NCBI GenBank assembly: GCA_977030845.1 | Contig: OZ365118.1 | Location: forward strand, 3,782,001 to 3,846,000 | Length of the DNA stretch: 64,000 nt | From: Fimbriosthenelais zetlandica | Lineage: Eukaryota | Direction: 5' to 3' | Shown here: positions 7,706-31,728 of the stretch, piece by piece | Layout: each line of letters starts with the position of its first letter | Position numbering within the stretch: position 1 is the first letter of the stretch | Program-made: the position numbers and the translations under genes | The notes under the pieces: generated by a model | The model's database searches: none | Seen by the model: only the letters and a program-made list of their open reading frames with translations | Told to the model about the DNA's origin: nothing

Positions 7706-10700
7706 GGTTATTTTATTATTTGAGATTGGGTGGCTAATATTATTCAATTCTTGACTTATTCATATTGAATTTATAGAGGTATACGGAATATATAAGAGGA
7801 GATAGATCCTTGTTTTTGTATTTCCTTTATTCTGTCATAAAATAATTTATAGGTACCGTACAAAACATCTGCTCAGATTCAGTTTACTGCATCACTGTAC
7901 GAATATATATACAACCTTCACGAGTGCGTTTAAAAGGGGGAAACAAGTCAAAATTTACATTAAAAAAATTTAGTTCACAAAGCGTTAATAGTCTACAATA
8001 GCACTATTTATTTGTTAACATCTAAGACGGGGTTCGGGAAGGCAATCACTCAAAGTATTTTTTAAAAATTGAATGTTTAAGCAGATATATTTATTGAAGC
8101 TATCATGAAAGATGAGGAATAAAACTGGAAAATTATTACTTCTGACCTGATAAATGTTTTTCTTATACCGGTAATGACTTCTCAATTCACAGATCAAATT
8201 CACCTTAGAACGACTGGATTATAAAGATTTCATATCGAGACATACAATTTAAGCCTGATATTAAAATAAATAGTCACGTACTAAATGATTTTTCTATCTA
8301 CGAGTGACAAAAACATGTATTGTAAGACACAGTCTTTTCACACTGAACTTGAGCTAAGTTTCAAGAGACCTGGTTCAACCTAGGATTTTTTGTTCTGGAT
8401 AGTGCACAAATGTCTCATTTTCAACCAAAATAATTTAAAATAACTGTCATTTATAATAGGCCAGTTCTTCAACAGAATAATTTGCACAATTGTTTAGTTA
8501 ATTTGTCCAGTGATTGGACCAGGTCTCTAGAAACGCACCTTAAAGGCAAATTGGTGTGCAAGTTTTGCATCCATGAATACATAATATATGGACAAGCTCT
8601 TCACCGCTCCTGAACACTTCTATCGTTATTAGACGAGTGACTTATACATACAAACACTGACTGATCTCGTTTCACTTTTACCCAAGTTCAATAACATGTT
8701 CATTTTACAAGATATTCAGCTCTCCATGCAAACAAATGTCATTGTAACAATTCTATTTTCCCCTCTGTATAATATATGGAAGAATGAATACAATACACAA
8801 TTTGATGAATCGGTAATAAACATGGATAAAAAATGTATCTTCACTAACGCACTTGGTCCAATACTGGAGGATTGAAAGTCGATTCATTTTGACATTATTT
8901 GTAGTGGATATGAACCATTGGGACGTTATGTCGGCTAGATACTGCCATAATACAGTCACAGATCTTTTATTTCTATTTCTCAAAAAGCACAGAATTTAAA
9001 CAAATATCATACGCAATTCATTTCTTAAAGTAACCCCTTCCTACATTTAAACATCCATTATCCCTTCTTGTATGTCCACAGTTCCAGCAGATTTCAAGTG
9101 CTGCACGATGGTAACTCCCTTAAACAATAATATATTCTGCAAGTTTTGAGGTTACTAGGAAATCTTTCTCCAAAATGTTCAAGCCTCAGCTTTCTTGGAG
9201 TCTATCAAGTAGTGTGATAATAAAATATCTACTCATGATAAAAATGTTAAGTTCTATTAAACAAGCAGGACATTCTTGACTACCATATTATCATGACCAA
9301 AGCAATGTATTTCTCTAGATCTAACTTTGAGATTAAATAAGAATAAATTAAAGAATGTATGAAGTGCCTGAAGAAGCTTTCACAGATTGCAAACCCAAAG
9401 ATATAAACTGAAATCAAAAATTAAGAAAGAAAAATATTTCAATTTGAATGACAAATCAGGATTGTTTTACCAATGATTTAATTCTCTTGATTCTGCAAGA
9501 TTATTCTGCAAGACTTTCACGCATTCTTCTAACCATCTCCTTACCCTACTCTTACAGATTCATGATATGTTATTTCCATAGCGTTTAGAAAAACTGCGAT
9601 GAAAATGAATGATAAAGGAATGAAAGAAACGAGTACAAAATAATTTTACATGAGGCCAAAGATTGTTGTCAAATATAAACAAGAAATAATTCAACTTTAC
9701 AGAATGCAAAAGATGTTAGTACTGAATGTAATGCAACATCAGAAATACTTGAACACCGCATATTCAATAAAGTTCATATTATTTATACAGATTTTCAAAC
9801 CCCTTTTTGCTATTTATCTTATAGGATCGGACAGAATAAATAAGTAATAAAGAGTCTATATTTGATGAGATAAGAATAATGAATATACATTTACATACAT
9901 CTACTTTACATCTTCATTTGTTTCCTACAGTTTTCAGATAATACCGTATATCAAGTATCAAACACACCCACAAACACACACATATCAGAGTTAAATGCAC
10001 GTCTAGTATCTTGCAAATCAGCTGTGTAGGTAGGTCTCCAATGAATACCGGGCTATATATGAACTGGACAGCTTCAAGTCGTCTACTTGTATGTGTCATC
10101 TTACACATACACAAGCTCTGGGCATATAAATCTTGGATATATCTACCTAAACTAAATTTCCTAATGTATATGTATGTCTTATATCACAATATAAGAAAGA
10201 TGCCCGGGTCATATTGGGTTTTGTTCTAGGTTTGTTAGTACAGCAGGTTAGGCCCATGTAATGTATCTTGGGTCTAACGCCCACATAAAGCAGGTTTATA
10301 ATATAGAGCCACCAGATGAGTTGACACTACTGTAAGCAGTCCTGACCGCCTATATTGTACACTTGTACACGCCACCAGCCCGGGGCCAGCTATTGCCCGA
10401 CACCAAAGCTTGCATGGCTTTAATAATTCACCATAGAAAAAATAGAAAACTTTACTTTTTAATACATGCCTCTAAACCTCGATTTATCATCGATTTGAAA
10501 GCTGCTTGGGTGTTTTTAAAAGCCATCAGATGTTGGATACTTTATCATGGAGAATAGCCCACATTAGCTCAAGTCAAACATTGCGTTAAGGCCATGCGAC
10601 TTCATCAATACATACTGTACAAGTTGGTTCTACTACTGAAGAGGTAAGCGGTAAATAAATATAATATAGAATACACAGTTTATATTTATACCATTATCAA

Positions 10701-11340
10701 ACAACCAACTCATATGTATCATTTCAAAACCGAGTGTGCCAACGTTTCTTACACAATATTATGGGACTGTTGGCCACTCATAGAGACGGTGCAATATCAT
10801 AAACACAAACATTTCTGGTGCAGCGAAAATTTCCTGACAGATAAATATCATACCTCGGAACTAAATATCAAAGAAACCCACATATTTTACAGGCTTTCAG
10901 CTTATGTAATTATTCATTATGTAATATACTCACTCTGATATCATACATATTGTAGGTCCCTTGTTTTGCAATACAGATATACCAACCCAGGACTAAAATT
11001 TGTCTAATTTTAGTAAAGATTTCTGATTATAAGTTTAGGGTAATGTTCAGGATGAGGGGTAGGAAGTAGGATGACACCAGAAGCCGAGAGAAAACGATTC
11101 CCCTGGCAGAGCTGAACTATAGAGCTCAGCAGTAGCTTATCTTGTAAGTAAATTACAATCTAAAATCATCCTATGTGGCAGATAATGGGAGAGATCTTGG
11201 GAGCTGAGGGGGAAGAGTTTGAGTGAAGTTTCTCCCCATTTCAGCTTTGAGAGAAATGTGAAGAAAATGAGTTTTGCATGATGACCAGCGGTGGTTGAGA
11301 TGGGGGGGAGGTAGTCACATAGTCGACCGGTCATGAAGCT

Positions 11341-11463: not shown

Positions 11464-14400
11464 TCAGGTAGGTTCAGCCTGAAGTCCAGCGTTTTCAAAC
11501 CCTGAAAATAAAACATTCAAATTATAAATTCAGAAAGAAAACATTTAATCCAGCAAACTCATTGTCAAAGATAACTGATTCAATTTCCCATCGAATTTTA
11601 TAGATTTTCTTTTAAAAAGATTCAGAATAAACAGACTGATGGGCAATTCTTTGAAAATAGTAAATTTCCGAACTAAAGTCTAAAGTAACTCATGATATTT
11701 CCTCCATATGGACAGATAATGAGCAGATTAGTACTAGTCTTACCCTACAATATACTGATGGACATCCAAGGGACGATTGAGGGGGCTCTAAGGAATATTT
11801 CATCTAATAATTAATTCTCTACCACAATAATTAAGTTGATATCTACTACTAACCCCACTTTTATCCCTTTCCACATTACTAGACATTTACTTCTACTCTT
11901 ATCCAACGTTTAACAGAATAAAACAGCAGGTTAATTATACATTTATAATTGCCACATTTTAAGGCAATTTAAATGAGGAAATCAAACGAACAAAGGCAAA
12001 GAATGAACCTCAGGATAAAAGGAACCAAGAAGAAGATGAAAGCACTGAGTACAGCCAACATGGTAGTAACAATCATGCAGGAAGCGTGGACACTGTGCTA
12101 TTGTGTATATTTTCAGTCTATGTTCTGTGCATATATCTAGTGTAATAATGCATGTACATGATATAGTATCATTCATACAATGTTCAGTATCATTCCAAAG
12201 CTAGGCCACGCATCTGGGCTTGACTTTTTAAAAGACAAACTAAAGAATTAAAATTAAAGAAGCCAGATTGCTGGGAGTCATGCTGGGTGGGGGAAAGCAG
12301 GGACACCATTGTATCTTTGTACATATTTATGTCAATGTGGGATAAAAGGGGAAATCTACCACGAGGCATTCTCCCAACCAAAGAACAGAAACACACAACC
12401 GAACTAAAGATCGCAATGTTGAATGATCCCATGTGTGCAACCAATATGCCAAATCATGACGCAGATTAACATTGCTTGTGTTGGATTTGGGTGTTGTCCC
12501 ATCATGATTGAGTGCATTTTTCTGACATTTCTGGCTATTTATGACTGTATGTTGTGTTGGACAAACTAAAGATTAACAAGCACCTTGTTTTACTCATCAT
12601 AGTATTGTGTTGGGGAGATGGTCCCGTCAGTGTACGCCTGGAGATCATAATCCCCTGTAGAAAAAGGTCAGTGGAAAAAAAACTGTCAAAACTCAGAGAA
12701 ACTCACCACGACAAATAGAGAACAGAAATCACCAAATCATGAGCATAGACTATAGGTGAGGGTGGGGTGAGAGAGGAGGAGCAGCCTGCGACAAGATCAA
12801 AACCATGGGAGATGCAAGACTACATCTCTCCAAGAAAAAATCATTTCCTGATCAATGATCAATGAAATGAAAGTACCTATTCCTATCAGAAAGTCCCAAT
12901 AACCCCACAGATTAGCGGCTAATTGGAATTCAAATCATAACCTAAGAATCTTATATAGTTGAATGGATTAAATATATAGACCATCGTCCCAGAGTGGTAT
13001 ACCCATATTATTGGAGGTAGAAAGTATATGGACAGACTAGGAAAAACTGACACCCTGAAAGCTATCTAGGATAGAATAAAGAACCAGATATTTGAGGATA
13101 GGTTATAGTTTAACAGCAGCAGGGTATGAAGCAGGCCCCTCCATTCACCATTCTATATTAGTCTCTCAAATTGATCAACTCACCACCCTTATTTACTGTA
13201 TCGCTGTAAAAGTTTACAATTTATAAATTACAGTAATATTCTTATTGTTAGTCGTATCCCCTCCGTTAATCTTTAACATCTTATGAAAGGATTTTAAGTA
13301 ATGCAGAAGGACTAAGGAATATGGACATACAAGATGTATTCTTAATATGAACATTTCTTAATTTGTAATTAATGACAGTATCCACTATTTAATGTTAGTG
13401 TTCGTCAATACGTTCCATAAACGCTGGATTGAAATAAAGCCCCTCCAGGGAGGGAGCGAGGGTCAGTTGTCTTAGCTTTGTAAAAAAAAAAAAAAAAAAG
13501 CTGGTCTGAAGGAAATAAATTAAGTGAGAAGAAAAATAGAGGGAGTTAAAAAGACATACCAGGGTTCCCATAGAAATCAGAAAATCCATAACTTTTCATA
13601 GTTTTCCCGTAATTTTTGCAAAATGATTCCATAACTTTTAAACTTTTCCCGAGTTTTTCAAGGATTTTCGTGAACCAAGGGAATCCTGGCTAGTGATAGG
13701 GTGAGTATGTATGATGATTAGGCTTACCTGGACCATCCACGTCTCCTTCCTCCGCCCACCGCTGTCTCTGACCTAACAAACTATCATAGTCCTCGTCCAC
13801 CGTCCTGATAGGGTAGGTTACTCCATCTCCAAAACTACAAAACAAAATACCAACAATTATACAAACTATACATTCAATTAAATTACTACTTCTGGATCAA
13901 TCCGAAATGAATGTTCTTATTCAGGGAGACGCAAAATTGCTCATCAAATTATAAATTTTCATGGCGATAATTTCAAGTAATTTTCTAGTAAATACCCAAA
14001 ACGGCAAAGTATACAAATAAGTATTTTATATTTCAGATAATGCCCAGAATGGATTTTTTCATTGGGGTTAATATTTCTGGTTCTATAAAACTAGCATCAT
14101 TGTAGTTCCTAATTCTTAGTCATTTTATCAAACAGAACTTAAGGAGCCGGTCAACTACTGCAAAAAAAAGAGGATTAATAATACTGTAATTTACTGAAAA
14201 TACTACGACTTGGCTGGTGAAAAACAGAGTAAATGCTAATAAATGACAGGAGATTCTAGCGCTAGATTCTCGCTCAATAATTTGCTTAGGAAGCCCATAT
14301 ATATCCAGGGGTACCACAGGGTAAAAATATTCTTGAAAAATTGGACAATTTTTGGACAAAACACTATGACAACGACCTCTAGTTATAATCCTAATATGAC

Positions 14401-17400
14401 AACGTGAATAAATGAATTTAAATACGGCTGAATAAATATGACGACTGACGAAAATAATCTGTCAAAATAAAGTTAAACATGTATGCCGTTGTACGCGAAG
14501 AAGTGCAAGTCTAGTAAAGGAGAAAATTGTGCTTCTTCAGTGAAAATGTTTTGGGCCCTTAGTTGTTTTATATTTTCTTGTGAATTATTTGAAAAATTCT
14601 TCTTCGTTAAGCTTTTTTTGAGGGGAGGGAATGTATTTTTTACTCTTGAAAAAAGAGGCTGAAAGGCTGCAGGCAGTTCTTGAGATTGGCAATAGACTAA
14701 ACCTTAGCATCTAAGCTTCGCTGTTAGTAATATACAATCCTTCATTCCTATTCTTACTTACATATACTCCTATAACATTCTTTTTATAACAAATGACATT
14801 TGAAATATAACTGCTACCTAAATTAAACTCAAGTGTAATGTATGATACGTGCGATAACAGAAAAGATGAGAAAAGCACGCACAAGACAAGTTATTAACAT
14901 AGACCAGCACTCCACTCAATATCCGCCGATATTACATCGTCACTTGACGGCTCTAAGGTTAGTGGTGAAATAAAGGGCGGGGATGAGGCGGAGAGAGAGG
15001 CACACACCACAGCAGAACTAGCAAGGTTGAGAAAAGTGAAAGGAGAGAGAGGGATCTAACCCTATATGACTATAAGTCAAGCTTGTGGGCGTCTCCGTGC
15101 TAGGAGGCAAGATGTCCGAACTAATAGGCAAACTCTCAACTGGACTGAAAACAAAGAGAAGGGATGATTAGATGGGCGGAAGAGAGGGGGCGTGGCCCAG
15201 GCCAGGTACAACAGGCTCCCACCTACTGTATGGTATTACCTAGTACTTTAGTCTTTACGTTAAACCATGACTGGTGATGAGTGCTATAATAAATTAACGG
15301 TAGTGTATCTCTAAAGTGCTACTATAATGTACTCCACCCCACACGTGATTGACAAAGGAAATAAAAGGAAGAAAGGGTGAGAGAAAGATGAATATTGTAG
15401 TTACATATGACAGTCAATTTTGGTATAATATCGTTTTCAAATATCCAATATGCTAAATGAGTCTTGAACCATCATGTAATATAATATTAAAAGTTTCGAC
15501 ACGAAGTTAATGGAAATATATGTATGAATTTGGGAGCTTCATATTTGGATATATTTTTTGAGACTCTGCAAAAAAATACATGGAACATTCGAGGAAACCT
15601 AATTCATATTCAAAGCGTATGAAACATAGGGCCTAGAATCCATTTTTCTCTGGCCGCATTTATACAAGTGACTTAAGTCAATTTATAGAACCTTAATAAA
15701 TATATGAATTTCTCAGAGGAGGGAGCAGATATTTACAGAGGTTTTTAAGATTACACAAACTGAGAATGAACGTGATAAGCATTTAGAAGTGCAGTCATGT
15801 AGAGAGATGAATGTGAGAGAGAAATGGTGCATTCTCCGTGCACGCACTCAAACATTGAAAGCTTCGGTTAAAACAGGAGAAGGTAAGGTCCTCATTCAAA
15901 GCTCTGGTCATTCAAAAAAAGATTAAAATCCATGTTTATATAGTCCAATCTATCCCCAGAAAAGTTAGTTTATTGGAATTTGAAGTAGAGAGATGTCTTC
16001 CAAGAAATAACATAAGAAAGATATAGGTACTGTATTAGAGATTGAAATGAGTGAAATGAGATTGAAATTAGTGAATGAAATGAGATATCTTAAACCCAGA
16101 AGCTGAATGAGGCCCTAGTTATTTCATGATAGTTGTTAGATGACATACACACCAAGTTAAAGGAACATAAGATATTCAAATAAAAGTCATGGAAAATCAA
16201 TTTTGCCAATATCCTTGAGTGTGTGTACGAGTTAGAATATAAGAATAAAATTCCATGATTGTGAATAAGAAATAAAAATGAGTGTTATTAGAAATCACAC
16301 CATGCTTTCTCAGTCAGAATTTAAACTCTCCCAAAGTCATCATCAGATGGGGCAAGGTCAAAAGGTCAAAAGTTGAAGGTCAAAGTGAGAGAAGACTGTT
16401 GTACCTTGGCGCTGTATTTTCCATAGAGGAGTAGGTGGCTGAGGGCTGGGCCACTCGTGTGGGGTAAGTCACCCCGTCTCCAACACTGAAAGCCGCAAAA
16501 ATAGCATTAATAAGTCAGGGCACAAAAGGAGGGGTACAACCGTAACGCGACCAAAGACGGGTACACAAGGAGGTGGGGTACAACCATAACGCGACCAAAA
16601 AACGCGGAGAGAGAGAATGAGAGAGAGAGGCCAAAAACATGGTGTTAACAATCTACCGCGGTCAGCCTGAAGCTCGCAAACCCACACTTAAAGTATGTAT
16701 TTATATTGTAATAAACTGTTCTGCAGTCACACTTGTTGTATCATAAACCTGTCCTTATTACGTTTCCTTACCACTTATCTTTAAGGGTAGAGCAATAGAA
16801 GGGCATAGAAGGAATTCCGGAGGAGGGTTTGGAAACATGAAAGGAGTAGCTGAGTATGTTGTAATAGTGGGACAATAAACCACAAAATACTGCTAGACCA
16901 ACAACACAAAAGGCTGAAAACAATCAAATTACATCTACTTCAAATTGACATTGGCTCCCATAGAAAAAATAACAAAATAAAACATAGGGGAAAGAAGGGT
17001 GGATGATTGAAGGCTGAAGCATGATCTGGTACTATCAGAGGTTTTCTCAGTAAGAAGCTGGGATCAGAGTGAGATACTCACCTTGTAAAGACCGGAAGGA
17101 ACCACATCTTGGTGTCATCACCAAAGATTTCTATGAAGTTGCCTTGGCGACCTAAACTGAAGCCATCTTTGTCAGGGCCGCTTCTGAATATGGGCGCTCT
17201 AAAGGATTCTGAAATAAAGAGCAATAAATGTCTAGATATTTCATAAAATATATAGAAAGCTGTATTAAAAATGATTAGCCAAGCATGAACAATTATCATC
17301 TTAACATATGGATTATATTATGAAGCTTTTAAATATTTAGTGACTCACCTCAGACTGCAGACTGACTTGAACGAAATAACCACTTACCTTCAACGTAACC

Positions 17401-20400
17401 AAGCTTTTCCAAAACTCACCCAAAAAATAATCAACTCTAAAATTATGTTCCCCAAAAGAAAAAAGAAATCCTCAGTAACTTGGGCTTTAAAAGAGCTTCG
17501 GAGACAAGCTTGGGTTACCTTTTCCTATCAGTCTATCCTTCCCGCAATTCCTTCTAAGTTTAATGAAACCAGCAAAATCTAGAAGGAATTTACCAAGATA
17601 AACCTTAGCAGTTACTCCTGTCAGGGCCATATGTTCCATCCTCCCATTTCAGGCTTCCATTTGCTAAGGAACTCTCTGACAGATAAGGAGTGTGAAGTTT
17701 GACTGATATAAACCTTTTAGGAGTTACATACCCAGTGTGCTCCTATTCCTAGAGATGAGCCACATGTGGTAGCCCCAGAGAGAAATGACGCTGATAGCAA
17801 ACATGACAGCGGCGAAGAATAAAAACAGTATGTGCAGTTTGTTCAGGCCGCTACCGGTGGGCAGATCCTAGAAACAATGTAAAACCATGACAGGGAGGGG
17901 GTGGTTAGTTCTAACTGATCACCTAACTCTGACCAACGCCGGACCTACAGGGAACTAGACACACCTTGACCCTGTAATGGTCAGTCAATGTCCATTAACT
18001 CCATGGACATTAAGACTGGGGTTAGTATTAGGGACAAAACGCATCCACTCACATAATCTGAATACACACTCATTCTCCCATGAACCGACGGAGCCTGACA
18101 TCAGTATTTCAGATTCAAAAGCAGAATACTGAGGGGGTGGGGGTGGGTGGTTGAAAATCGAGGAGCCCTATGTTCCATGCCTTTTAGAGGTAGAAGGGAG
18201 TATAAATATGCCAAACAAGACAGAAAATAGAGGCAAGGAAAAGTTAAAAGTGATTATATATTACAGCACTTGGAAAAGATTTGAGAAAAATTGTGGCAGG
18301 CTGGGGGTGTTCAAAGAATGCGTGCACTGTGTGGGGCGATCTAACCTAACAAACCGGCTAGAGAAAAGAGAAAGAAACTGAGACAAAATAATCTACTTCA
18401 CCTTCAATGCAGACCCCATCCACTATATCAAATGCCCAAGTCATGGATGGTTTCAATTTGACAGAGCAGACAAATAGTGTAATCACTTACCATTCAAGTA
18501 TCAGAAGAATAAATTCGTGAACAGGCAGTTCTGACTTACTTCTAATAAAAGACATGACATCTGCTAGCCCCCATTTATAGCATGCGTGTAGGTAAAGTGC
18601 CCAGTTAAAAAATGAAATGATATTGTGGGTAAATAGTAATAGAAAAAAGATCAAAGATCAAGCATTTATATAGTAAAAGGTGTATATTATAATAAAGGTA
18701 GAATAATTAAAAGCAGCTGAGGTCTAGCAGAAGCCATGACATTCTAACAAACCCTGAGATGTCCACAGTCAAGACTCGGTCTGGGTGAGGGCCGCATTCC
18801 ACTAAACAGAGCATCAATCAGATGGATACCAGATCCCTCCATTCTATTTATAACCCAAGGCAAATTTCAACTTCATTGGCAGTAATGGGACCTTTACATG
18901 CCTTTCTCTCGGGCCTATACACACCTATACATTAGCAATATTCGAGGCAGAAGGACAAGTGGAAAATTTAGAGTCTGCTTGGGGAATCGAACCAGGGACT
19001 TGGGGGTTGAGCCAAAGGGACATTTCAGCACGATTAGAAGAGGAGGATTAGTGAAATATCTGATGAAGTATCTGTTTAGTGGAGCATGGCCTTTAGAGGG
19101 TGGGGGGAGAGTAGTGGATCAGGCCCCTCTGTGGACGTACCTAAGGTAGAGCGGTTGACTGAGACGAGGTAGCAATGGTAGCCGAAGAGAGAGATGAGAC
19201 TAATGGCGAACATGACCGCAGCAAAAAACAAGAAGAGCACGTGAAATTTGCCCATCCCTTGATCTGAATCTCCCTGAAATAGAGATGTAACTGGCTGACA
19301 AGGTGCGCAGCCGGTCTGAGGCTGCTTCAAATTATAATCAAATCAAACAAATATTAAAATTAGACTCCATGCGATGACGGGCATCTTTCTATGATCATCT
19401 AGCATGAAATGAAAGCTCTGCCAACAAAATGGCAGAGCACCGAAGTAGAGGTATTTTTCTAAGGGGCATATATATTGATTACATAAATTCTATAATCAAA
19501 ATGGTAGGAAAAGCATATTGTACTACCCTATAGTCCCTTTTTCAACAGGAGACTTAGGATGAAGCACAGACGATAAAAGATGACGATAGGAAATACTAAA
19601 ACATCAATGAATCATGCATTGTACCATACATTTTTCCATGGGGAACCAAGAAGAAAATAAGAAATTAAGGGGAGATGGGCGCGGGGTTAAGGCGAGGTCA
19701 ATATTATACAACATGGTTATAACAGACTCCGTAATTCAACATTCACCATAAACATTGAGCATTCATTCACCTAATTCTCACATTCATTAAGCATTAATGT
19801 TGGGGAATCATGTCTAGTTCCTGGTAGGCCAGGCGCGCAGATGAAAGGTTTCACATCAATTATTGCGCAATGTGAGAGAAAAGGTTACATAATATCCTGA
19901 AATTCAGCATCAATTATAAATCAATAAATTTATAAATATGAATCAAACCTTGATAAATGATTTCAGGACTACTCTATGATATAATAAGTTACTGTATCGG
20001 GAATAATTTGTAATATTTTTAACCATATTTCTTCATATTGATACAATACATATTGCATCCAGATTGGAATGAAAACGATGATAAAAACAGCTAGTGCAAT
20101 GACTAATGAATGTGGCTAGTAAACACTCTCGTGCTATAAAGGACCAGATTCTATTAAATCTCCAATCTGCGACACATCATGACAACTTGGTCGCGACAAA
20201 TACATGTGCAGCGCATGTAGCGACAATAAAACGACAAACAAGGAAAACTTCTATGAATTCCTCCTATAAACTTCCCAGCAGTGTTTTGAAGGATACTGTC
20301 CCTTCACCAAAGTCCGGGGTACAAACCAAGGTATTTATAAATATCAAAAAATAATTCAAAAATAATTTTAAGTCATGGGTCAAGTTTGATATAGAACACC

Positions 20401-23400
20401 GACATATTCACGAACTGTAAGCCTAGAGCCGCTACGAGTGGCAGAGAGGAGCTCAAAAACTTTACACTTACGTATTTCCAGGCCCAACTCTAGGAAAATT
20501 TTTGAGCAAAATGAGTTAACATTTTTGGGGGATTGCAGGAAAATATTTCAAAACACTGCAGGGGTGACAGAACAGGCCAAAACCATATTAACCATACATC
20601 GTTAATATCCGATTCACTGATGGATAACCCTTCTCATTTCTTTCATGTTCTCTTCAACATGAATACTTTTAGTTTTGTTTCAGAGAAGACTCTCTATCTA
20701 AAATGCCAGTGAATACATACCTCCAAATGCCTTAGATTTTATATTATAAATTATAAAAACAATATAAAAGTTTGCCCTGAATTCATGTCTTGTATATGCT
20801 CCTTTCCACAAGATATTCAAACAATTTTCAACCAACGCAATCAAGACAACATAGAGAACAAATTTCGTAAAGAAAGAAATATAAGAAACGATATGAAAAC
20901 AGGGCAATGCCCTCAGTCTAGTGGCTAAGTGTGGTCTACACTCAAGTGTAGGTCTAGATATATGCAAAATAATGAATAGAAATGTGACCAGATGTTCTAA
21001 GTGCACTTGACGCTCTAACCTGCTCTGTGGTGGAGGGCTGCTGGTCCTTATGCTGCCAATAAATAATTATGATTCAAAGACTAATATAAAACTATTCCTA
21101 CCCAGAAAATAAAAACTGGAATAAACAGATTAATAAGGCAAACCAAACTCTACATATATCTAATACTGCAGCTTAGCTAATCTGCCGAAAACGCAGGTCA
21201 AGGGGCCCAAATACTTCTTCTTTAAAAAGAATAAATTTTGATCTATTGTTTCTAAGTCAAGAATACAGAAATGAATGGAAAACATACAATATCTAACCAG
21301 GAGTCTGTCAACTTGAACCAAAACAGAATTTGGAACGAAGATATAATATCATGGAACCGGTCTGTGGCCAGGTTTCTTTGGGGACATTGAAATAAACCAG
21401 ATATTAACTAAGCTCACATTGTCTAATTATTCCTGTGAACTTTAATTAATTGAACCTTGGTGTAGTGTAAGACAAGAATTAATCTAAACCCTAGGACATG
21501 GAAAAGACTGAGCTATGAAAATATTGTGGAACGTATAATAAGAAATATATTGGATTAGAATGTAAGAGAATATAAATGTAACTTACCGTCCAGAATTTGA
21601 TGAAATACTGTAACGATGTAGCAGCAACATAAATACAGTAGACGAAGGCGTAACCCAGGAAGAGCACAAAAAACTTGTAGTTTGTGAAACAAACACAGTT
21701 GTTAACCCATGGGCAGTGATGGTCCATTTTTAGCACGCATCTGAAAGTTGAGATTATCCATTGTTAAAACTTGTATTCCAAAATCTGTTATATTTTAAAT
21801 AAAAAAAAATAGCAGGAGATGGAGAAAAGCAACACTTACTGTCCACACACTGAACAATGGTGTGCACGATCTGGCTTTATACATTTGCATTTTTCACAAT
21901 AACGAATTGCTGAAAGATAAGAAAGAAAACTTCAACTTCTATTGCTTATTTCTTAAGATAGTTATTTTAAAGGAGTTCGGATCTAAATTTGAATATTTTA
22001 TATTGGTCTTAGTCCAAAAATAGTCGAAAGTTTTAATGATGCCAATTAGAGGGGAGAGGAGTGGGAGTGGGAGACCGTGGAGAGTGGAGAGTGAAGGGGT
22101 GGGAGAGTGAGTGGGTGTGAGAGTGAGGGGGTGGGGGGGGGGGGGGGGTGAGTGGGTGTGAGAGAAGAAGTGAAGGCTTATTGCAGACTTACACCCGGAG
22201 GCTGTTCTGTTCTGAACCGGCAGATTTCGAGCAGCTCTCGCTAGGATCTCTTTTTGTATCTCCTCATTTTCCTCCCTCTCAAACTGGTCCACGTCACCTC
22301 GTGACAGGTAGAACTGTGAAAATCACAAAAAAAACATCTTATTAACAAAGGTTCATGGTTGATGGACGGGCAGGGAATAAAAGCGAGCAGGTCTTCATTC
22401 AGAACCTGCCACTCGGACATAAAACCAACCAGATATAAACTTATGCTGAGTCTAAGAAATAGGATAATTTGACAATTATATCGAGACATTTATATTTTCC
22501 ATTTTGAATGATTATATGTTTTATTCCTAACTGTTCAGGAACTAATAAATCCATCATATATTATTTTCAAACTATATTCAATCAATCATTGAAGGTATAG
22601 ACGGTACAAAAAAGACCATATTTTCACTGAAAAAGAACTGAAATTAAAAGGCTAATTAGAGGTTATAATTAAACTTTGGGGAGGGGGATATGATGGGAAA
22701 TACCCCTCGTTCTTTCCCTCTCTCAGGGGGAGGGGGCCCAGCCTAATTTCCCCCTATATAACCTACCTCTTTAGGTACGGATCCCGCCTCTGTGAAGATA
22801 GTTTGCCAATAAGCCCAGGCAAACATGACCATGATGGGGTGATAGCCCACCAAGTAGAGCACTGAAAGAACACCCCAAGTCTATCACCTCCTGGTCATTA
22901 TCACTTGTCATCACTGACCACTGGTCAACACTGACCACTGGTCGTCACTGACCAACACTTCATCCTGTGCTCTAACATGCCGACTTGGGGTGCAGCTTCA
23001 TGCGATGATCAATAGTGGACAAGGGAGTCTGTCTGGCTTTCATTCAACATGGGTTTTTCCCCCAACAAATATTTATTTCCACAGTAATCTAAAATTTACC
23101 CTGATTTCCCTGTGAATTTTATTATTTCACAATTAATGTAAAAGAGAGATAATCTCTCCAGAAATATTTACATGGTGGGATTATAATGTATGGATTAGAT
23201 TATCCAGCCAGACAGTTAAATCCCTCGAACACTTACAGTCTGTGAATACATTCATGTACAGGAAGATCCTGCCTTACTTTGGGACTAATTTATAGGATCT
23301 TCCTCCACATTTATCCTTCACAGACCAAACATAATATTTTACAACAGAAAAAACAGAGTAACTCACATTTTTTGGCGCATGGCCAGGATCTGTGAAGATG

Positions 23401-24746
23401 GTCCTCGCATATGACCAAAGGAACATGAAGAGGATTGGATGGTAGAGAATAAGGTACACCACTGTAAGCAGCAGCACATGCAAGAAACCAGGCAAAACAG
23501 AACAATAATAAAGGCGTATATATAGACTGTGCTAAACCAGGGGCAATAAACACTTATAATACAGACTGACTTATAATACAGCGCTTAAATCAAAATAACA
23601 CTACAACTCATCATAAGGACAAATTAATCATCAGAAATAAGGTTATGCATACTGATACACTACTCTAGCACTGGTACATGACTGAATACATAGATTTAAG
23701 GCGGCCAAAGGGGGCAACTACATTACTTCAGGTCTTACAAACTATAATGTAAAGATTTCTGTACAGGGGAAGGGATAATGCTGCCAATAATTCTGATCCA
23801 TATATAAAACAATTTAGCTAAGTACTTCTACACACAAAAGATAAAACAATAACTTGAATGGACAAATGCTACACAGATGATGGATGTGTATGATGTGTAT
23901 TGGAAGTAGAGGGTATTTATCAGACAAATATCAACAATACTATCAACAATACTATCTCCCTTTTGATGATGATTTAACCTTTACTTTATCAGTAACAACT
24001 GATTGACTGCATGTCTTGCAGATTCTTAATGTAATGTCATAAATTTCATGATATAACACATAAAAACCGGCATATTGTTAACATGACTTAAATACAATGT
24101 ATCAATGTTCTAGATCAGATGAAAGATACCTACATTTCTCAGGAATATTGTCTACTGTGACTGAAAAGCAGAAACAAACATACCTATTAGTACACTACAG
24201 CATTTATTGAGATCATACCTAGTCAATATTAATTTAACTGTCACATGAGTCATTCACAGGGTTGACATGTCTGTACCAGACTGGAAAGCCTGTACTGACT
24301 ACAGCCTACACTGGCTACAGTACTGTACGGTACAGGGTCAGGGGTGAGTGAGGGGAGTGACACTCAATTCGTGACACACCCCCTCCCAGAGCTCGATATG
24401 TCACACCCGGATACTTAAAATCAATCTATAAACACCATTTTAACCATACAACCTTAATGGACACATCAGTTTGGTGTATTTAATCCATGGAGATGACAGT
24501 GACAGTGTCACAGACAGTGTCAGTCTCGTTAAATAAAGCCAAGGCTAAGCCTACCTCCAAACCGACACTGTCTTTGCCGACAGACACAAAACAAACGACC
24601 GTTTCTACGATAATAAAGAAGTCCTACTTACATAAACACATCTGAATAACGTAGGCATAGTAAGACCACACAACTACAGCCGTAATAAACACTACAGGCG
24701 CCCATCGTATAATCGCAAAACAGATATTTAGAAGTTTCGGTGCCAT
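11464..24746 (-). CDS. ZDHHC2: DHHC palmitoyltransferase, ZDHHC2/15/20 family (about 355 aa in the reference isoform)
   Basis: Phase-consistent exons (minus): 24632-24746 (MAPKLL...VIQMCL), 24134-24160 (27-nt FTVDNIPEK), 23367-23461 (TDPG), 22193-22313, 21840-21909 ([21 protein letters not shown]), 21587-21740 ([12 protein letters not shown]), 19141-19273 (TM4, RSTLE), 17082-17208 (FRAPIF...WFLP), 16405-16485, 13728-13834, 11464-11501 ([12 protein letters not shown]). Total 1068 nt. Probably co-orthologous to vertebrate ZDHHC2, 15 and 20. Confidence 0.95.
12590..12654 (-). CDS. ZDHHC2: Candidate alternative terminal exon of ZDHHC ([21 protein letters not shown])
   Basis: Strong acceptor cctttttctacag. 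Phase 1 matches the donor of exon 13728-13834, and the frame is open to TAA at 12590-12592. Confidence 0.55.
13560..13688. mobile_element. ~130-bp MITE-like element with CAGGGTTCCC/GGGAATCCTG termini
   Basis: 10-11 bp imperfect terminal inverted repeats beginning CAGGG, as in many hAT elements. No clear target-site duplication. Confidence 0.5.
15061..15144 (-). CDS. ZDHHC2: Candidate 84-nt symmetric cassette exon of ZDHHC ([27 protein letters not shown])
   Basis: Acceptor cccttctctttgttttcag, donor GG|gttaga, phase 2-2, open frame. A second in-frame acceptor at 15120 gives a 60-nt form. Confidence 0.55.
16405..16485 (-). CDS. ZDHHC2: 81-nt symmetric exon ([26 protein letters not shown]), paralogous to exon 13728-13834
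   Basis: tttcag / AG|gtacaa, phase 2-2. It starts with the GDGVTYP motif, as does exon 13728-13834 ([12 protein letters not shown]). Confidence 0.8.
17732..17867 (-). CDS. ZDHHC2: Second, mutually exclusive copy of the ZDHHC TM4 exon
   Basis: Acceptor ttgtttctag, donor CTGG|gtatgt, 136 nt, phase 0-1 like exon 19141-19273. Encodes [45 protein letters not shown](E). Confidence 0.9.
18972..19030 (-). mobile_element. tRNA-derived SINE-like remnant (B-box)
   Basis: Minus strand ccctggttcgattccccaagcagac; B-box at 18983-18993. Confidence 0.45.
22080..22165. repeat. Purine-rich low-complexity tract with a poly-G run
   Basis: (gagtgg)n-like sequence plus about 15 consecutive G. It is C-rich on the ZDHHC pre-mRNA, just after the exon 4 donor. 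Confidence 0.85.
22910..22956. repeat. Short ~17-bp tandem repeat with a palindromic core
   Basis: cactgaccactggtc in 2.5 copies; gacca-c-tggtc is self-complementary. Confidence 0.6.
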
Positions 24747-25288: not shown

Positions 25289-28200
25289 ATGTCTGGGGAA
25301 ATCTTATCTTTCGATCCTATCAAAGTCAATGGAAATTCAGATGGTAAGTGTCATTTTGTTTAGAAGATTATATGGGGCCTAGAATTAGAGGAATTTATAA
25401 TTCATTATCCGTAGGCGTGGCCATGGCATAGGCATAGGCCAGCAATATAGCCATAAGGCCTAATTTAGCCTAATAATAATGCATAACCTATGTCTATGTC
25501 ATGGTTATGTCATAGACATGATGTTAATAATTAAATTATAGTTAATTAATTATTACATGATCCCATCATATAATTATATTATTATATTGTATTGCATATC
25601 TAGCTCACTTTTACAATTTTTTAATTTAGGCGATGGCTTTTATCAAAGTCTTAGATAGGCCTACCAGCTCATGTGTTTATAATTTAAATAATATTAACCA
25701 TTTGTTCATATGTTCTTACAGATCCTCGGTTTGACATGTCACCTCCAAGAAGCAAGACACAAGCTTCTGAGCTTGGACTAGAGACTAGTGAGGAAGTCAG
25801 AGTGAACCCTGAACTTTCTGTAACTATGACACCGTCAAAAAGCTGGGATGTGGATGTACGGCTACATCTCTCCAGCCAGAAATGGCTCTCAACATATGGC
25901 CTGAAGAAAAACAGGCTGAATATGTACCATATCATGCCGCAGATAGGGTTCAAACACAGCGAAGGTAATTCATCTGTTAATAAAAAAGGATGGAACAATA
26001 GGCTACCCGGTGAATCACCAGTTATAATGTCTGGGGCTAACCACTAGGGATTCAATTATCTCCAGTGAATCAATAAATTATTAAATTCTAATATTACAGA
26101 ATGTTTTACATGGCTATGCAGCATGTGTTTCATGCTTCCAGATCCCCTCTAAATTTCAGGATAATCCGCTAAGTATGTCGAATTTCAGAGGAGACATTAG
26201 GACACTTTGAATTGAAAGATTACATTAGTTGCTTTAGCATGGCTTTTACCCAATCAACTGGTACTCTCTCTAGGTAAAAGCTAGCCCTACCACCCTCAAT
26301 CTTAATCCCCACACAGTGTCGCTAACCCCAACACTAATCCGCAAACCCCAACTGCCCACTGGTCAGTCAGAAGCAATCAGGCATGACCAAAGCTTAATTC
26401 GCGTGAGGTAAAAGCTACGACCCTGATCTAGATTTGAACCCACGACCAATAAGTCACATGGTTAAAAGCTGGAACCTATACTTCAATACAAAACGCCTAC
26501 CCCCATTCCTCCACATGCGGCAGGAATTTGTTTCAAATTCAATCGGAATATTGACCAACACAAAACATGTTAATCATAATCTTTCAGGGCAATATTGAAC
26601 AAAGGGCTCCTGAATAAAACTTACAAAGGCTACAGTTCTTTGGCTGGGTGTCAGATTAGTCCATTCATCCATTTTTAATTTAACCAATTCATCCATTTTT
26701 AATTTACAAATGCCCCAACAAAGCATTATCAGGAAGGGGTCTACTGGCGCTAGTGTGTTAACTATAGGAACTGTCCTGTATTAGTTTTTGATAATGACAG
26801 AGTTAGTACCAGGGTTGCTATGGTCAGTCATTATTATATATATATTGATATTTTCACGCTGATTGAGCAGTTTAGATGGTTTAGATGATTGCTCATAGCA
26901 ATCTCCACCCCAGGACCATTCACCTGTGTAATCTCAGATCAGGACAGGTGTGATTAAAGAGAAATTATCAGAAATCTAATTAACGGTACTAGTAATTAAT
27001 AAGTGTACATGCTCTCTTCAATAACCCCTCCTATACTTCTACCTGTGCTGCCCATTTTTAGTCCGTATCCATTTAATATTTAAGCACCCTTTCATAAATG
27101 AAATTTTCCTTATACATTTTGTATATCTGTAATGGTACAGAATCCCTAGAGAAAATACTGCGGCATGATTGCCTTAGGAGCTCTTTTCCTACCATTTAAA
27201 GAATCTTCAAATAAATGTTTTTGTCAGGAGCAGGTCTGGTTTGATCCTTTAGAAACACTTTCTCTTCTTAATGAAATATTTACAAGAATCAAACACAATT
27301 ACACCGGAAGAAAAGGTTGTTTTTTCTTCATGGTATTTCTGGTCAGAGCAGCCCACCTTGGTATGCGCCCAGCTCCGTTCCCATACACACAAGGATGGAG
27401 GGGTGCCAATCATTCATCGATTCATTGATTTATTGATTTTTCAATACTCCCCCGTGTTTGATGGTGTCGGTAATGTATGAGAGGGAAAGCCGGATGAAAA
27501 GTGTATGAAACCTTCATATAGAGCGGCACAATATACCCCTATAAGTGACTACTCAATGGGCAGTCTATGGGGCATTATATAGCCTATTCCACTGTATATG
27601 GAAAATTTATGACATGATTTAGAGCTGCATTGAAGAGAATCCATTACCACTATTGTGGTCAGATTTTCCGGTTAATAAACTTTCACTTTCATGTATTGAG
27701 TGGAAAATGGAAATAAATCATATATAAATTATACTGCAATTGTCACTACATTGTATCCCTAATTGGTTCAGGTAGCCTTGGATAAATATCCCGGTTAAAG
27801 TATACCATTTTTGGCCCTATACATTATTATGCCCATCCAATCACTGAACGTCTTAAAATGTATGATAAATATAGCTACATCTTCTTTTGTTTTATTTCAG
27901 ATTTTGACTCCTTTTTACGGAAGCCAGTGGCGTCTAAATATGGAGAAGGATTATTCCAAAAATACCAGAGATCAGATGGGAAAATGTTTAACGTAGGTCT
28001 TCAAAACCTTTTTATCTTTTTTTTGCTGCATATTGGTACCATTAATCAGTGTAGGCTGGAGAATGACCATTTATTAGTGCACTGATGCCGTATGGTTACC
28101 CACTGTTTTGTTTGCATGTTGAGCTGCAGTGATAATGTTTTAGCAAGGCCAGCATGCCAGAATGGATTGTTTTTATTGATTTTCTATCAAAAGAGTTATC

Positions 28201-31200
28201 AATATTGTGAACAGCTGCAGGAAAAAAGACTGATGCTTTGCTTCCCCAACCATACCCGAGTTAGCTTTCATCTAATTGATTGAGAAAGTCTATAAAATCG
28301 AAATTAGCATTGGAAATGTCCATCTTGCTGAGGGAACTAACCTTTCTGAAATAGGAATATACTTCGAAACGATATATGAAAAATAGCTTTCTCAGAGTTT
28401 GATATATTCAGTTGCCAATGTTTTTAAGTATCGATTGCAGTTGTACTGACTTTCACCTGTCAATGGATGAATGAACTCCAGATGTTAAAAATCTATTTGT
28501 AAAAAAAGGATTTGAAGTGATTTATTTTCTTCCTCGTCATGGCAACTTTGAACGTCTAGACTAGCTCTGAAACAAACAGTGAGAAACTTCTTGCCTGCCT
28601 GACTCCTGAATCCTTCATAATTAATAGTTTAAGTTGATTAGTTCACATTCAAATGGTTCCTTGTCTAAGAGGAAAGTACCAGTGAAGTACTACTTAATGG
28701 TGAAGAAATGAGTCATTGTTTTGTGTTGAATTCCTCCATGAAATGGTCATGAATAAATTATTTTCTGCATTACTTTCTGCCAAATCATCCTTAAAATATC
28801 AAGAGAAATGACCCAAAGAGTTTTCATTTTATCCTTTGTAATGAACAAAGGGTAAAACAACTATATTGTACATATATAACTATATATGAAAGATATTTCT
28901 ATCTTCACTTAAATGATACTTTATTTTAGAAGAATGAATCTCATTTTACCATGAAAAGATCTACATTGTATTTTCTTTCAGCATTATTGACTAACTAATC
29001 TAACTATTCTCTCACCTGTACTGATTTTATTACAGGTATCTTGTAGTAAGGAGAAGCTCCGTCAGATAGAGTTACGACTCACACAGGCTCTGAGTCTGTA
29101 TAAGAAGCGGTTAGACTGGTTAACATCAGAGAGTCGGCGGATATTCGGTGTGATAGAGGAGAAGAGTGTGTGTATCGTCATTGATATAGCTGACACCACA
29201 CCCAAACTATTCAACCAGTTCCGCAGCGGCCTGGAGCGAGTTATCAAAGAACAAGTCTCTATGGTGTCCAAGTTTAACATTATCAGGTGGGTGGGCGTTT
29301 AAATTCCATTATTTAACACATAGCACTTGGTGGAGAACCCAAAAGCTTGCATGGATCACAAATGTCAGAGTGGGAATCACTTCAGCCAAGAAAGGACTTG
29401 TGCAATCAAATAGAAAACTCATATCCTTAAAGTTGTTATCATGAGGTACCTTTATATGCTACTGTTTTCTAATAGAAGTATTTCTGATGAAATGCTAAAT
29501 GTGTTATTTTGTGATCAGGGCCTCGGATGACCTGGACGCCTTCTCTAAGCAGTGTATGCCAGTCAGTACAGAGACTATTAGTCAGGCTGTACAGTGGCTG
29601 TGGAAGCTGGAGAGGTCAGCTCCTGTCGGGAACACAGCTACATGTGAGGCTGTCCTCAAAGCCATGACAGACAACCAGGTAAATGTAGTAATATTCAAGA
29701 TTAATTACATTCCTAAAGCTGGGTCCTAATGGCCAGCATCTTGCTATTCAGGTTGTGCACTTCTGTAGCCCTTTTGGAACTTAGATTTTTTAGTAATATT
29801 TTTCTGGCAAACTCTTTTACAGTTAGATGGGATTTACTTGTACACAGAAGGATCATCAAGTGACAAGTCAAGAGAGCTGCTCGCTGGAAAGGTATTGCTC
29901 TTTGTCTAAAATACATATCCCTTGAGCAGTTAATCTGCTCAAACTTAATCAATCGTAATCATGACAAACAAAGTTATTCTGAGGTACATATGAATTGTTA
30001 TCAGGTCGTGAAAAGATCTGTATAGAAAGCAATTGAAGATAATATGTCCTGGTTTTCAGTTATCTGGTGCCCGCATTCCCACACATGTGGTCTCCTTCAA
30101 CTGTACAAAATCAGACACCATCAAGTCACTAAAAAACCTGGCCAAAGTCACAGGTGGAAGGTGGGTGCCTCTTACTCATCCCCTCAATTGTTTCATTCAT
30201 CAAATGAAACAGAAAATCCGTATTCAATTTAAGTCAGAAACCTATGATATATTCTCTTTCCCTTTTTCTAGGTTTCACGCCTACGCGGTAGTGATGGAGC
30301 TGGACTCGTATGAAGCAGATACTAAGACAGAAGGATCAGGCGGACAATCTAACGTCATCCTAAAGAAGAAGACGTACGGGGGTGTGCCATCAGGGGCGGG
30401 CATGAGGGAGGACGTTATATTAATGTTTGAGGAACTAGAAGAGGCCAGGACCGCCCTCTCACAAGTCACGGCTATTATTACATCCATGCCTGAAGCTAGG
30501 CCTGCAGTCGGTGAGTATGGGTGCTCACAATAGCTAATGGATTAAATATTAGTATTATTAATCAGTTATGAAGGCTAGGATTAACTGTTGATTGAGTAAA
30601 CTGCCTACACGATTATTTAGGAAGCAAATGTTAAAGTGAAGTATCTTCTGGCGGGTGAATTCAATATTAAAACAATATTAAATATCCTTATTTTAACTCA
30701 TGCTGCAGAAGGGCAAAGGGAGGACCATAGAACAAGAGGTAAAACTTCACTTTTTCACAACTTTTACAAGCGCAGTCTTTGAATCATTGATCGACTGGGT
30801 TTAAACACTCACATTAATCGCTATATGAATGATATTAACTCATATTAATGTGGTTTTATTCAGAGAGTGCTAATAACGTAAATAACCGGGTGTCAGACCG
30901 TAGTGAGACGTACATGAGTTCACGGGAGTGGCTCAACAAGTACGGTCTGAAGGCCAGGAAGCTGGGCTTCTATGACGTACTGGCTGGAGTAGCCTTTAAA
31001 CACAGAGATGGGGTGGTGGAGCTAAACCATGCTCCCGACGGAGAGTACCAAACAGACGCCGTAAGTTACTCAACTTAAAGCTTCAAATATATTTTCCAAA
31101 ATCTAGTATTTCCAATAAATTCACCACATATAATTGATCCTGATTTAAACTCTAAATACTATGTGCCACAAAAGGTCTGCTGGTAAATTCGCAGATCATT

Positions 31201-31691
31201 TTTGTTTAATTTTGTGTAACTGTACATATTTGAGTTTATATTATGACTATGTTTGACTTTAGTTAAGGAGAGATAAGTTGATCAACGCCCGGTACTGTGA
31301 TAAGTTCCCCCATGTTCGCTGGAAGGATGGACAGGTGGTACATGTACAAGTCACCCCAGAGATGCACAGATCATACGAACAGAAAGTCAACCTTACTCTC
31401 AATGCCATCCAACAAAGGTAGGCTACCAGAACTACTATCACATAGAAAAACTAAATCATATTTTTATGTCTCACAAAATGATTAAAATCATAGAAAAAAT
31501 ATTAAAATTATATTGAGACTATTTGCTTGTATGTATTACAGGATTGACTGGCTGCAGCAGGGCAGTCGAGAGCTGTTTGGTACAGTCATAGAGGAGCAGA
31601 TGTACATTCTCATAGACACCTCATCTTCAATGTCTCCCCACATCCAGTTTGTCAAGGATAAAATATTTGTCCTCATGCAGGTAAGAGACCC

Positions 31692-31728
<37 letters not shown>

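Follow-up and report, generated by a model that had tools for sequence, protein, structure and literature searches.

A candidate pair of mutually exclusive exons for the fourth transmembrane helix of a ZDHHC2/15/20-type palmitoyltransferase gene in Fimbriosthenelais zetlandica

A palmitoyltransferase gene of the ZDHHC2/15/20 type was identified in a stretch of 64,000 nucleotides from Fimbriosthenelais zetlandica (GenBank assembly GCA_977030845.1, contig OZ365118.1, positions 3,782,001 to 3,846,000 of the forward strand), which is called the window here and to which the coordinates refer. The gene lay on the minus strand and ran from about 24.7 to 13.7 kb of the window, with its exons rebuilt from sequence. 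Two of them, exons 7a and 7b, each encode a version of the fourth transmembrane helix (TM4), and they very probably constitute a functional mutually exclusive pair from an old tandem duplication, one member entering each mRNA and giving two forms of one S-acyltransferase. The pair had been proposed earlier by a model working from the letters and a list of open reading frames (ORFs), and its coordinates, lengths, translations and the junctions at 21587 and 17208 were correct, as was the remark that exon 7b is missing from the ORF track. Acceptors of the rebuilt exons were all AG and donors all GT, every site was of the GT-AG type, and no U12-type splice signal was seen among the sites of the rebuilt gene. 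The features, from 5' to 3' of the gene, are as follows.

Exon 1: 24632-24746, minus strand; ATG at 24746, transmembrane helix 1 (TM1), ending in phase 1.
Exon 2: 24134-24160, minus strand; microexon of 27 nt encoding FTVDNIPEK, which matches an xTVxxxxEK stretch in the aligned relatives.
Exon 3a: 23367-23461, minus strand; 95 nt, TM2, ending in ...TDPGHAPKN; first member of a second either/or pair.
Exon 3b: 22767-22861, minus strand; 95 nt, TM2, ending in ...TEAGSVPKE; second member of the TM2 pair.
Exon 4: 22193-22313, minus strand; cytosolic loop.
Exon 5: 21840-21909, minus strand; the Cys-rich domain begins here.
Exon 6: 21587-21740, minus strand; DHHC motif and TM3, with a donor at 21586 common to 7a and 7b.
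Candidate docking element: 19811-19835, minus strand; within intron 6, preceding exon 7a by 537-561 nt.
Exon 7a: 19141-19273, minus strand; 133 nt, TM3-4 loop, TM4 and the start of the TTxE motif; ancestral-like copy.
Candidate selector element: 17937-17961, minus strand; 69-93 nt upstream of exon 7b and complementary to 19811-19835.
Exon 7b: 17732-17867, minus strand; 136 nt, alternative TM3-4 loop and TM4; derived copy.
Exon 8: 17082-17208, minus strand; completes the Glu of S-T-L-E and encodes the conserved C-terminal region.
Exon 9a: 16405-16485, minus strand; 81 nt, frame-neutral, homologue of a cassette exon of other phyla.
Exon 9b: 13728-13834, minus strand; conserved tail with a 17-residue block; the most 3' exon mapped.

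The product of exon 6 contained the Cys-rich domain with the DHHC motif (a stretch of 12 residues), and it matched Pfam PF01529 with an E-value of 9e-18 (cut-off 28.7 bits). The assembled isoforms were 60-69% identical to ZDHHC2, ZDHHC15 or ZDHHC20-like proteins of annelids, molluscs and arthropods. The closest named full-length protein was that of the annelid Paralvinella palmiformis (68% identity), which also shared a tail motif of 12 residues with the window protein; a transcript-derived, bivalve-like sequence (P0253) reached 69%, and full-length relatives from bivalves, chiton, ribbon worm and brachiopod ranged from 61 to 68%. By its motif, its TTxE and its nearest full-length relatives, the window gene belongs to the ZDHHC2/15/20 subfamily of DHHC S-acyltransferases, its activity being predicted.

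Exon 7a was preceded by the acceptor ...tctatttcag and followed by the donor GTACGT, and exon 7b by ...ttgtttctag and GTATGT. Both lengths are 1 mod 3, and both exons are entered in phase 0 and left in phase 1, as had been claimed, which made either of them compatible with the end of exon 6 (21587) and the start of exon 8 (17208). With 7a or 7b included singly the frame stayed open through exon 8, while joining both produced a stop at codon 243 and leaving out both a stop at codon 212. The earlier statement that both or neither would break the frame was thus borne out, and since either error gives an early stop, exclusivity would be assured at least by the frame. An mRNA with both or neither of the exons would be exposed to nonsense-mediated decay, with the frame acting as a safety net. 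No more than these two copies of the TM4 exon were present in the window.

At the protein level 7a and 7b shared 29 of 44 residues (66%; 78% within the helix), and at the DNA level 55 of 132 bases differed, with 30 of these differences falling on the third position of a codon. Different codons were used for 20 of the 29 identical residues. The synonymous distance by NG86 was undefined, with the sites saturated, and the nonsynonymous distance (dN) was 0.24-0.35. When an equal number of changes was placed at random, 13 residues remained identical on average, and 29 were reached in none of 20,000 simulations. Saturation of the synonymous sites together with an identity beyond that of the simulations shows that 7a and 7b are old tandem duplicates, both under purifying selection, in agreement with the original prediction, which had taken conserved protein and diverged codons as marks of old, maintained copies. 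Its core, a tandem, homologous and frame-enforced either/or TM4 pair that is old and selected, is supported by the sequence features.

The donors of both exons (19135-19140 for 7a and 17726-17731 for 7b) were off the consensus at +4. Among eight other donors checked upstream, six were GTAAGT or GTGAGT, and those of exons 2 and 3b were GTAGGT. The donors of the tandem TM4 copies of Paralvinella and Owenia were mostly weak as well.

For the protein region exchanged, both exons matched positions 94-126 of the Pfam DHHC profile and could be aligned to the TM3-4 loop, TM4 and TTxE start of zebrafish DHHC15 (6BMS, residues 202-245) and human DHHC20 (6BML and related entries) with E-values of 7e-13 to 3e-9. 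This upheld the claim that the swap covers TM4 as it leads into STLE. Both exons end in ...NRSTL, to which exon 8 adds the Glu of S-T-L-E; Ser here replaces the first Thr, a substitution shared by many relatives.

Published residue numbers of human DHHC20 (TTxE at 240-243, Ser229, Tyr230, Trp233 and Leu213) were used as anchors. In this numbering 7a and 7b differed in the helix at 208 (F/L), 210 (V/I), 224 (L/V), 228 (F/W), 232 (C/M), 233 (Y/W), 235 (V/I) and 237 (V/R), mostly at the cytosolic end beside TTxE (224-237), and the lumenal TM3-4 loop ahead of the helix was also rewritten. The Cys of ...GYHC... in 7a is Met in 7b, as had been noticed earlier. The centre of the helix, 13 residues equivalent to 211-223 and including Leu213 at the cavity tip, was identical in both.

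The acyl cavity of DHHC20 is lined by all four transmembrane helices and closed at its tip by Ser29, Tyr181, Val185 and Leu213 (PMC9006032), and in a simulation a substrate helix contacts Ser229, Tyr230 and Trp233, with TTxE at 240-243 (PMC10622425). Because both exons have the same Leu213 and differ in the loop on the lumenal side and towards the cytosolic end, the TM4 swap seems more likely to alter the cytosolic membrane and substrate interface beside TTxE than a chain-length ruler. Each mRNA would hold 7a or 7b, the two enzymes differing in the lumenal TM3-4 loop and at eight TM4 positions, and the changed cytosolic membrane interface might affect the approach of substrates, the setting of TTxE and the catalytic site, or contacts with partners.

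The spacer between 7a and 7b measured 1273 nt, which rules out steric exclusion. The original prediction had drawn the same conclusion and named RNA pairing or nonsense-mediated decay as the control; this fits both the early stops and a significant pairing found upstream of 7b. In an unbiased scan for inverted matches over 17209-21586, the top-ranked pair was 17937-17961 with 19811-19835, complementary at 21 of 25 positions, and the extended duplex had about -49 kcal/mol. Both arms were unique in the window, with no longer inverted repeat and no abundant element. When the 200 nt upstream of 7b were scored without gaps against intron 6 and 7a, the score was reached by 0 of 300 and then 1 of 1000 dinucleotide shuffles, and three control zones scored at chance level.

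The duplex is a candidate looping switch. The element upstream of 7b would pair with the one in intron 6, loop out 7a and draw 7b towards the donor of exon 6, and when the pairing is absent the nearer exon 7a would be used. RNA looping is the preferred, unproven model for the choice between 7a and 7b. In the Paralvinella locus (L001) the beginning of copy 1 could pair perfectly, at 16 out of 16 positions, with a site that precedes copy 2 by 127-142 nt (1 of 300 shuffles).

Tandem TM4 exons were present at the corresponding site in two annelid relatives. Paralvinella had two, at 8555-8687 and 9504-9642 of its locus, both in one phase and bounded by AG and GT. Owenia fusiformis had three intact ones (L005, 7976-8105, 9337-9469 and 11193-11325), the most divergent copy standing first. 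A single TM4 exon was found in the scallop Pecten (L002), the brachiopod Lingula (L003) and the ribbon worm Lineus (L006).

Four protein records of Owenia concerned the same gene, and as far as the end of exon 8 CAH1776517 departed from CAH1776516, CAH1776518 and CAH1776519 only in the TM4 exon, for which either copy A or copy B was used. Beyond that, three of these records diverged at the last residues after ...EEGVTEPPI. The gene set of Owenia combined RNA-seq with ab initio models (PMC9977687). This annotation is the sole transcript-level support for either/or use of the TM4 exons, and it stands for a relative, not for the window species. The third Owenia copy (11193-11325), intact, was in none of the four isoforms listed.

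Among 227 full-length relatives no isoform pair differing in TM4 was found, which is expected because the database is merged at 90% identity. The isoform pairs of ticks, insects and molluscs varied in the 9a cassette or the C-terminal end and none in TM4, and no TM4 variation was present in the cluster listings of ribbon worms, chiton, gastropod and cephalopods. Against the single TM4 exon of arthropods, molluscs and hemichordates, 7a scored 15-18 bits above 7b, which had no near twin; 7a being nearer to the single exon of other phyla, it is regarded as the ancestral-like copy and 7b as the derived one.

A family of b-like exons (...NLHIVFLFF...SRNRSTL) was found among fragments from the database, and a full-length mRNA (L007) carried one too. 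These had been considered as a sign of alternative use of a 7b-type exon, and this was dropped, the genomes concerned having only one TM4 exon: about 20 worm-like host contigs (of 38 JGI metagenome contigs; L008-L029) had just one TM4 exon, of the b-like type, in the interval from exon 6 to exon 8. A b-like TM4 can, as these contigs show, serve alone, and their lineage may have lost the a-type copy.

The exons of TM4 were compared in trees of 30 and 47 rows and 44 columns. In the 47-row tree copy 2 of Paralvinella grouped with the b-like exons (support 94/87), and constraining 7b to this group gave a likelihood 5.6 units higher than the free search. In addition, four of the eight changes from 7a to 7b recurred in Paralvinella copy 2 (F208L, V210I, L224V and V237R). 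From these comparisons we lean towards one old duplication of the TM4 exon with later losses.

Several results weigh against the mutually exclusive pair as set out above. The TM4 pair is not universal, and the lone b-like exon of the worm-like contigs deprives the L007 mRNA of value as evidence for alternative use. In the 44-column trees the sisterhood of 7a and 7b was not rejected (approximately unbiased test, p-AU 0.47-0.61; 0.47 in the 47-row tree), so that a single annelid-wide origin is not established by the tree. No significant partner was found for the zones upstream of 7a or downstream of 7a and 7b, which leaves a single pair and no separate selector for each exon. Between the window and Paralvinella the paired sequences were unrelated, and the Owenia locus had no significant pairing in the shuffle test. 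Furthermore, no sequencing run was listed for this genome, either for a stretch of 6 kb (RNA only) or for the part from exon 8 to 7b (runs of any kind), and we infer the splicing of 7b into mRNA in F. zetlandica from its genome.

A possible, rather unlikely case is that both exons are used and that the pairs of the window species, Paralvinella and Owenia were duplicated independently, the likeness of the copies being due to packing constraint and the pairing to chance or a side effect. A 44-column tree could not separate single from independent origins, the order of copies in Owenia is different with the most divergent first, and the pairing elements are unconserved in sequence and absent in Owenia; independent origins of such pairs have also been argued for mrp-1 in work cited by PMC7434440. 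The recurrence of half of the eight helix differences in Paralvinella copy 2, the 94/87 grouping of this copy with the b-like exons and the gain in likelihood on placing 7b there stand on the other side.

Apart from the TM4 exons, a second either/or pair, overlooked in the original prediction, was found in the gene. Exons 3a and 3b, both encoding TM2, are 95 nt each, of the same phase and with AG/GT sites; joined together they led to a stop at codon 134, and without either a stop arose at codon 53. They were identical at 17 of 31 residues, a value reached in 0 of 20,000 simulations, and their silent sites were saturated; only 3a had the D-P-G triplet after the TM2 helix. The TM2 cluster gave no significant pairing in the shuffle test. 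A single TM2 exon was present in Paralvinella, Owenia, Pecten, Lingula and Lineus, and with one exon in five species the 3a/3b pair looks lineage-specific. The two pairs may provide up to four enzyme cores from one gene. In two gene models of Mytilus coruscus (P0276 and P0282) the TM2 segment was partly repeated (...WAYAKTIFTDV... twice), which hints at a read-through of tandem TM2 exons or at an assembly artefact.

A wider proposal would join these elements, with two independent either/or clusters (TM2 and TM4) and a cassette exon in one DHHC gene giving at least four cores that differ in the handling of substrates and acyl-CoA, with the RNA loop setting TM4, the TM4 cluster dating from the annelid root, and a role like that of the vertebrate ZDHHC2, ZDHHC15 and ZDHHC20 paralogues. 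As a whole this is doubtful.

Quite improbable is that 7b is an unused relic of the duplication, a pseudo-exon, and that 7a alone is ever spliced. In its favour, no RNA run was listed for the window species, the lone exon of other phyla is like 7a, the ORF listing lacks 7b, and the annotated protein of Paralvinella (P0294) takes copy 1 only. However, the frame of 7b stayed open, its AG and GT splice sites were intact and two thirds of its residues were retained despite saturation at silent sites, as in none of the neutral copies simulated. Paralvinella and Owenia have also preserved a second TM4 copy at this site, and the Owenia annotation uses the divergent copy. Least probable of all, to the point of being nearly dismissed, is a mainly "poison" role in which 7b joined to 7a shifts the frame and lowers the output of the gene through nonsense-mediated decay, since such an exon needs no conserved protein and 7b shows strong purifying selection with third-position changes dominating and family-wide residues kept (e.g. 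...GYH... and NRSTL), though the stop of the double form lies well upstream of later junctions and the donors GTACGT and GTATGT are weaker than the constitutive GTAAGT and GTGAGT.

The mutually exclusive TM4 pair can be compared with several known systems. The nearest analogue described is COQ-2, whose exons 6a and 6e are mutually exclusive in nematodes, flatworms, annelids and molluscs, and their switch between precursors of ubiquinone and rhodoquinone, as well as their splicing, has been demonstrated experimentally (PMC7434440). Here too a polytopic membrane enzyme would have its core remodelled by homologous exons used one at a time, one copy being pan-eukaryotic-like and the other derived, and annelids are included in both cases. 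The differences are that the DHHC pair is known from sequence while the COQ-2 switch and splicing are experimental, that the enzyme family is another one, and that the taxon spread differs, the DHHC pair occurring in annelid-type genomes only and not in the scallop, brachiopod and ribbon worm examined.

Pairing between docking sites and selector sequences in RNA governs mutually exclusive clusters such as Dscam exon 6, 14-3-3 xi, Mhc and mrp-1. The DHHC gene resembles them in having a long intron, which rules out steric exclusion, and an element just before the distal exon whose complement lies farther 5', and pairing of the two would put the proximal exon into a loop. It differs in having one pair instead of selectors competing for a common docking site, and between species its predicted pairing shows neither conserved sequence nor compensatory changes; the upstream arm in Paralvinella is part of exon copy 1, and no such pairing occurs in Owenia.

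Vertebrate ZDHHC2, ZDHHC15 and ZDHHC20 are of the same subfamily, and these three genes diversify TM4 along with other parts, which the window gene may do similarly by the choice of exons. The vertebrate paralogues differ everywhere and have separate promoters, whereas the window gene would vary TM4 (and TM2) on a constant catalytic domain. A further case is that of CAH1776516-CAH1776519 of Owenia, where the TM4 exon is the only internal difference and stands at the same position of the same gene; there the tandem copies are three, with the divergent one first and one copy in none of the listed isoforms. No paper remarking on these records was found. No description of mutually exclusive exons in a DHHC enzyme was found in literature searches that covered such exons in palmitoyltransferases and in annelids as well as splice variants of zDHHC enzymes, and the original prediction likewise knew of none.

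How DHHC enzymes choose their substrate and fatty acid is an open question, and tests mostly use engineered mutants or whole paralogues. The window gene offers natural swaps of helices, TM4 and also TM2, on an otherwise identical enzyme, by which the contribution of the helices could be tested. It would add a membrane enzyme to the short list, with COQ-2, in which the choice of exon remodels the enzyme core, and a small two-exon system for control by RNA looping outside the arthropods. The DHHC exon pair is credible and useful to the field of palmitoylation, and is not a new principle.

For the remaining exons, the microexon 2 between TM1 and TM2 is easily overlooked, and a protein without it is nine residues short compared with the relatives. 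Exon 9a starts like exon 9b (S-x-G-D-G-V-T-Y-P), and its counterpart was a cassette, in or out, in annotated isoforms of ticks, insects, gastropods, cephalopods, chiton and ribbon worms.

Head to head with the DHHC gene, a large gene was located on the plus strand at about 25700-33200, with a VWA_3 domain in the ORF 31852-32193 (E 8.5e-13). In Lingula and Lineus a gene with VWA, Tudor and DUF4537 domains stood in the same divergent orientation next to the DHHC gene, which marks the gene pair as a conserved neighbourhood.

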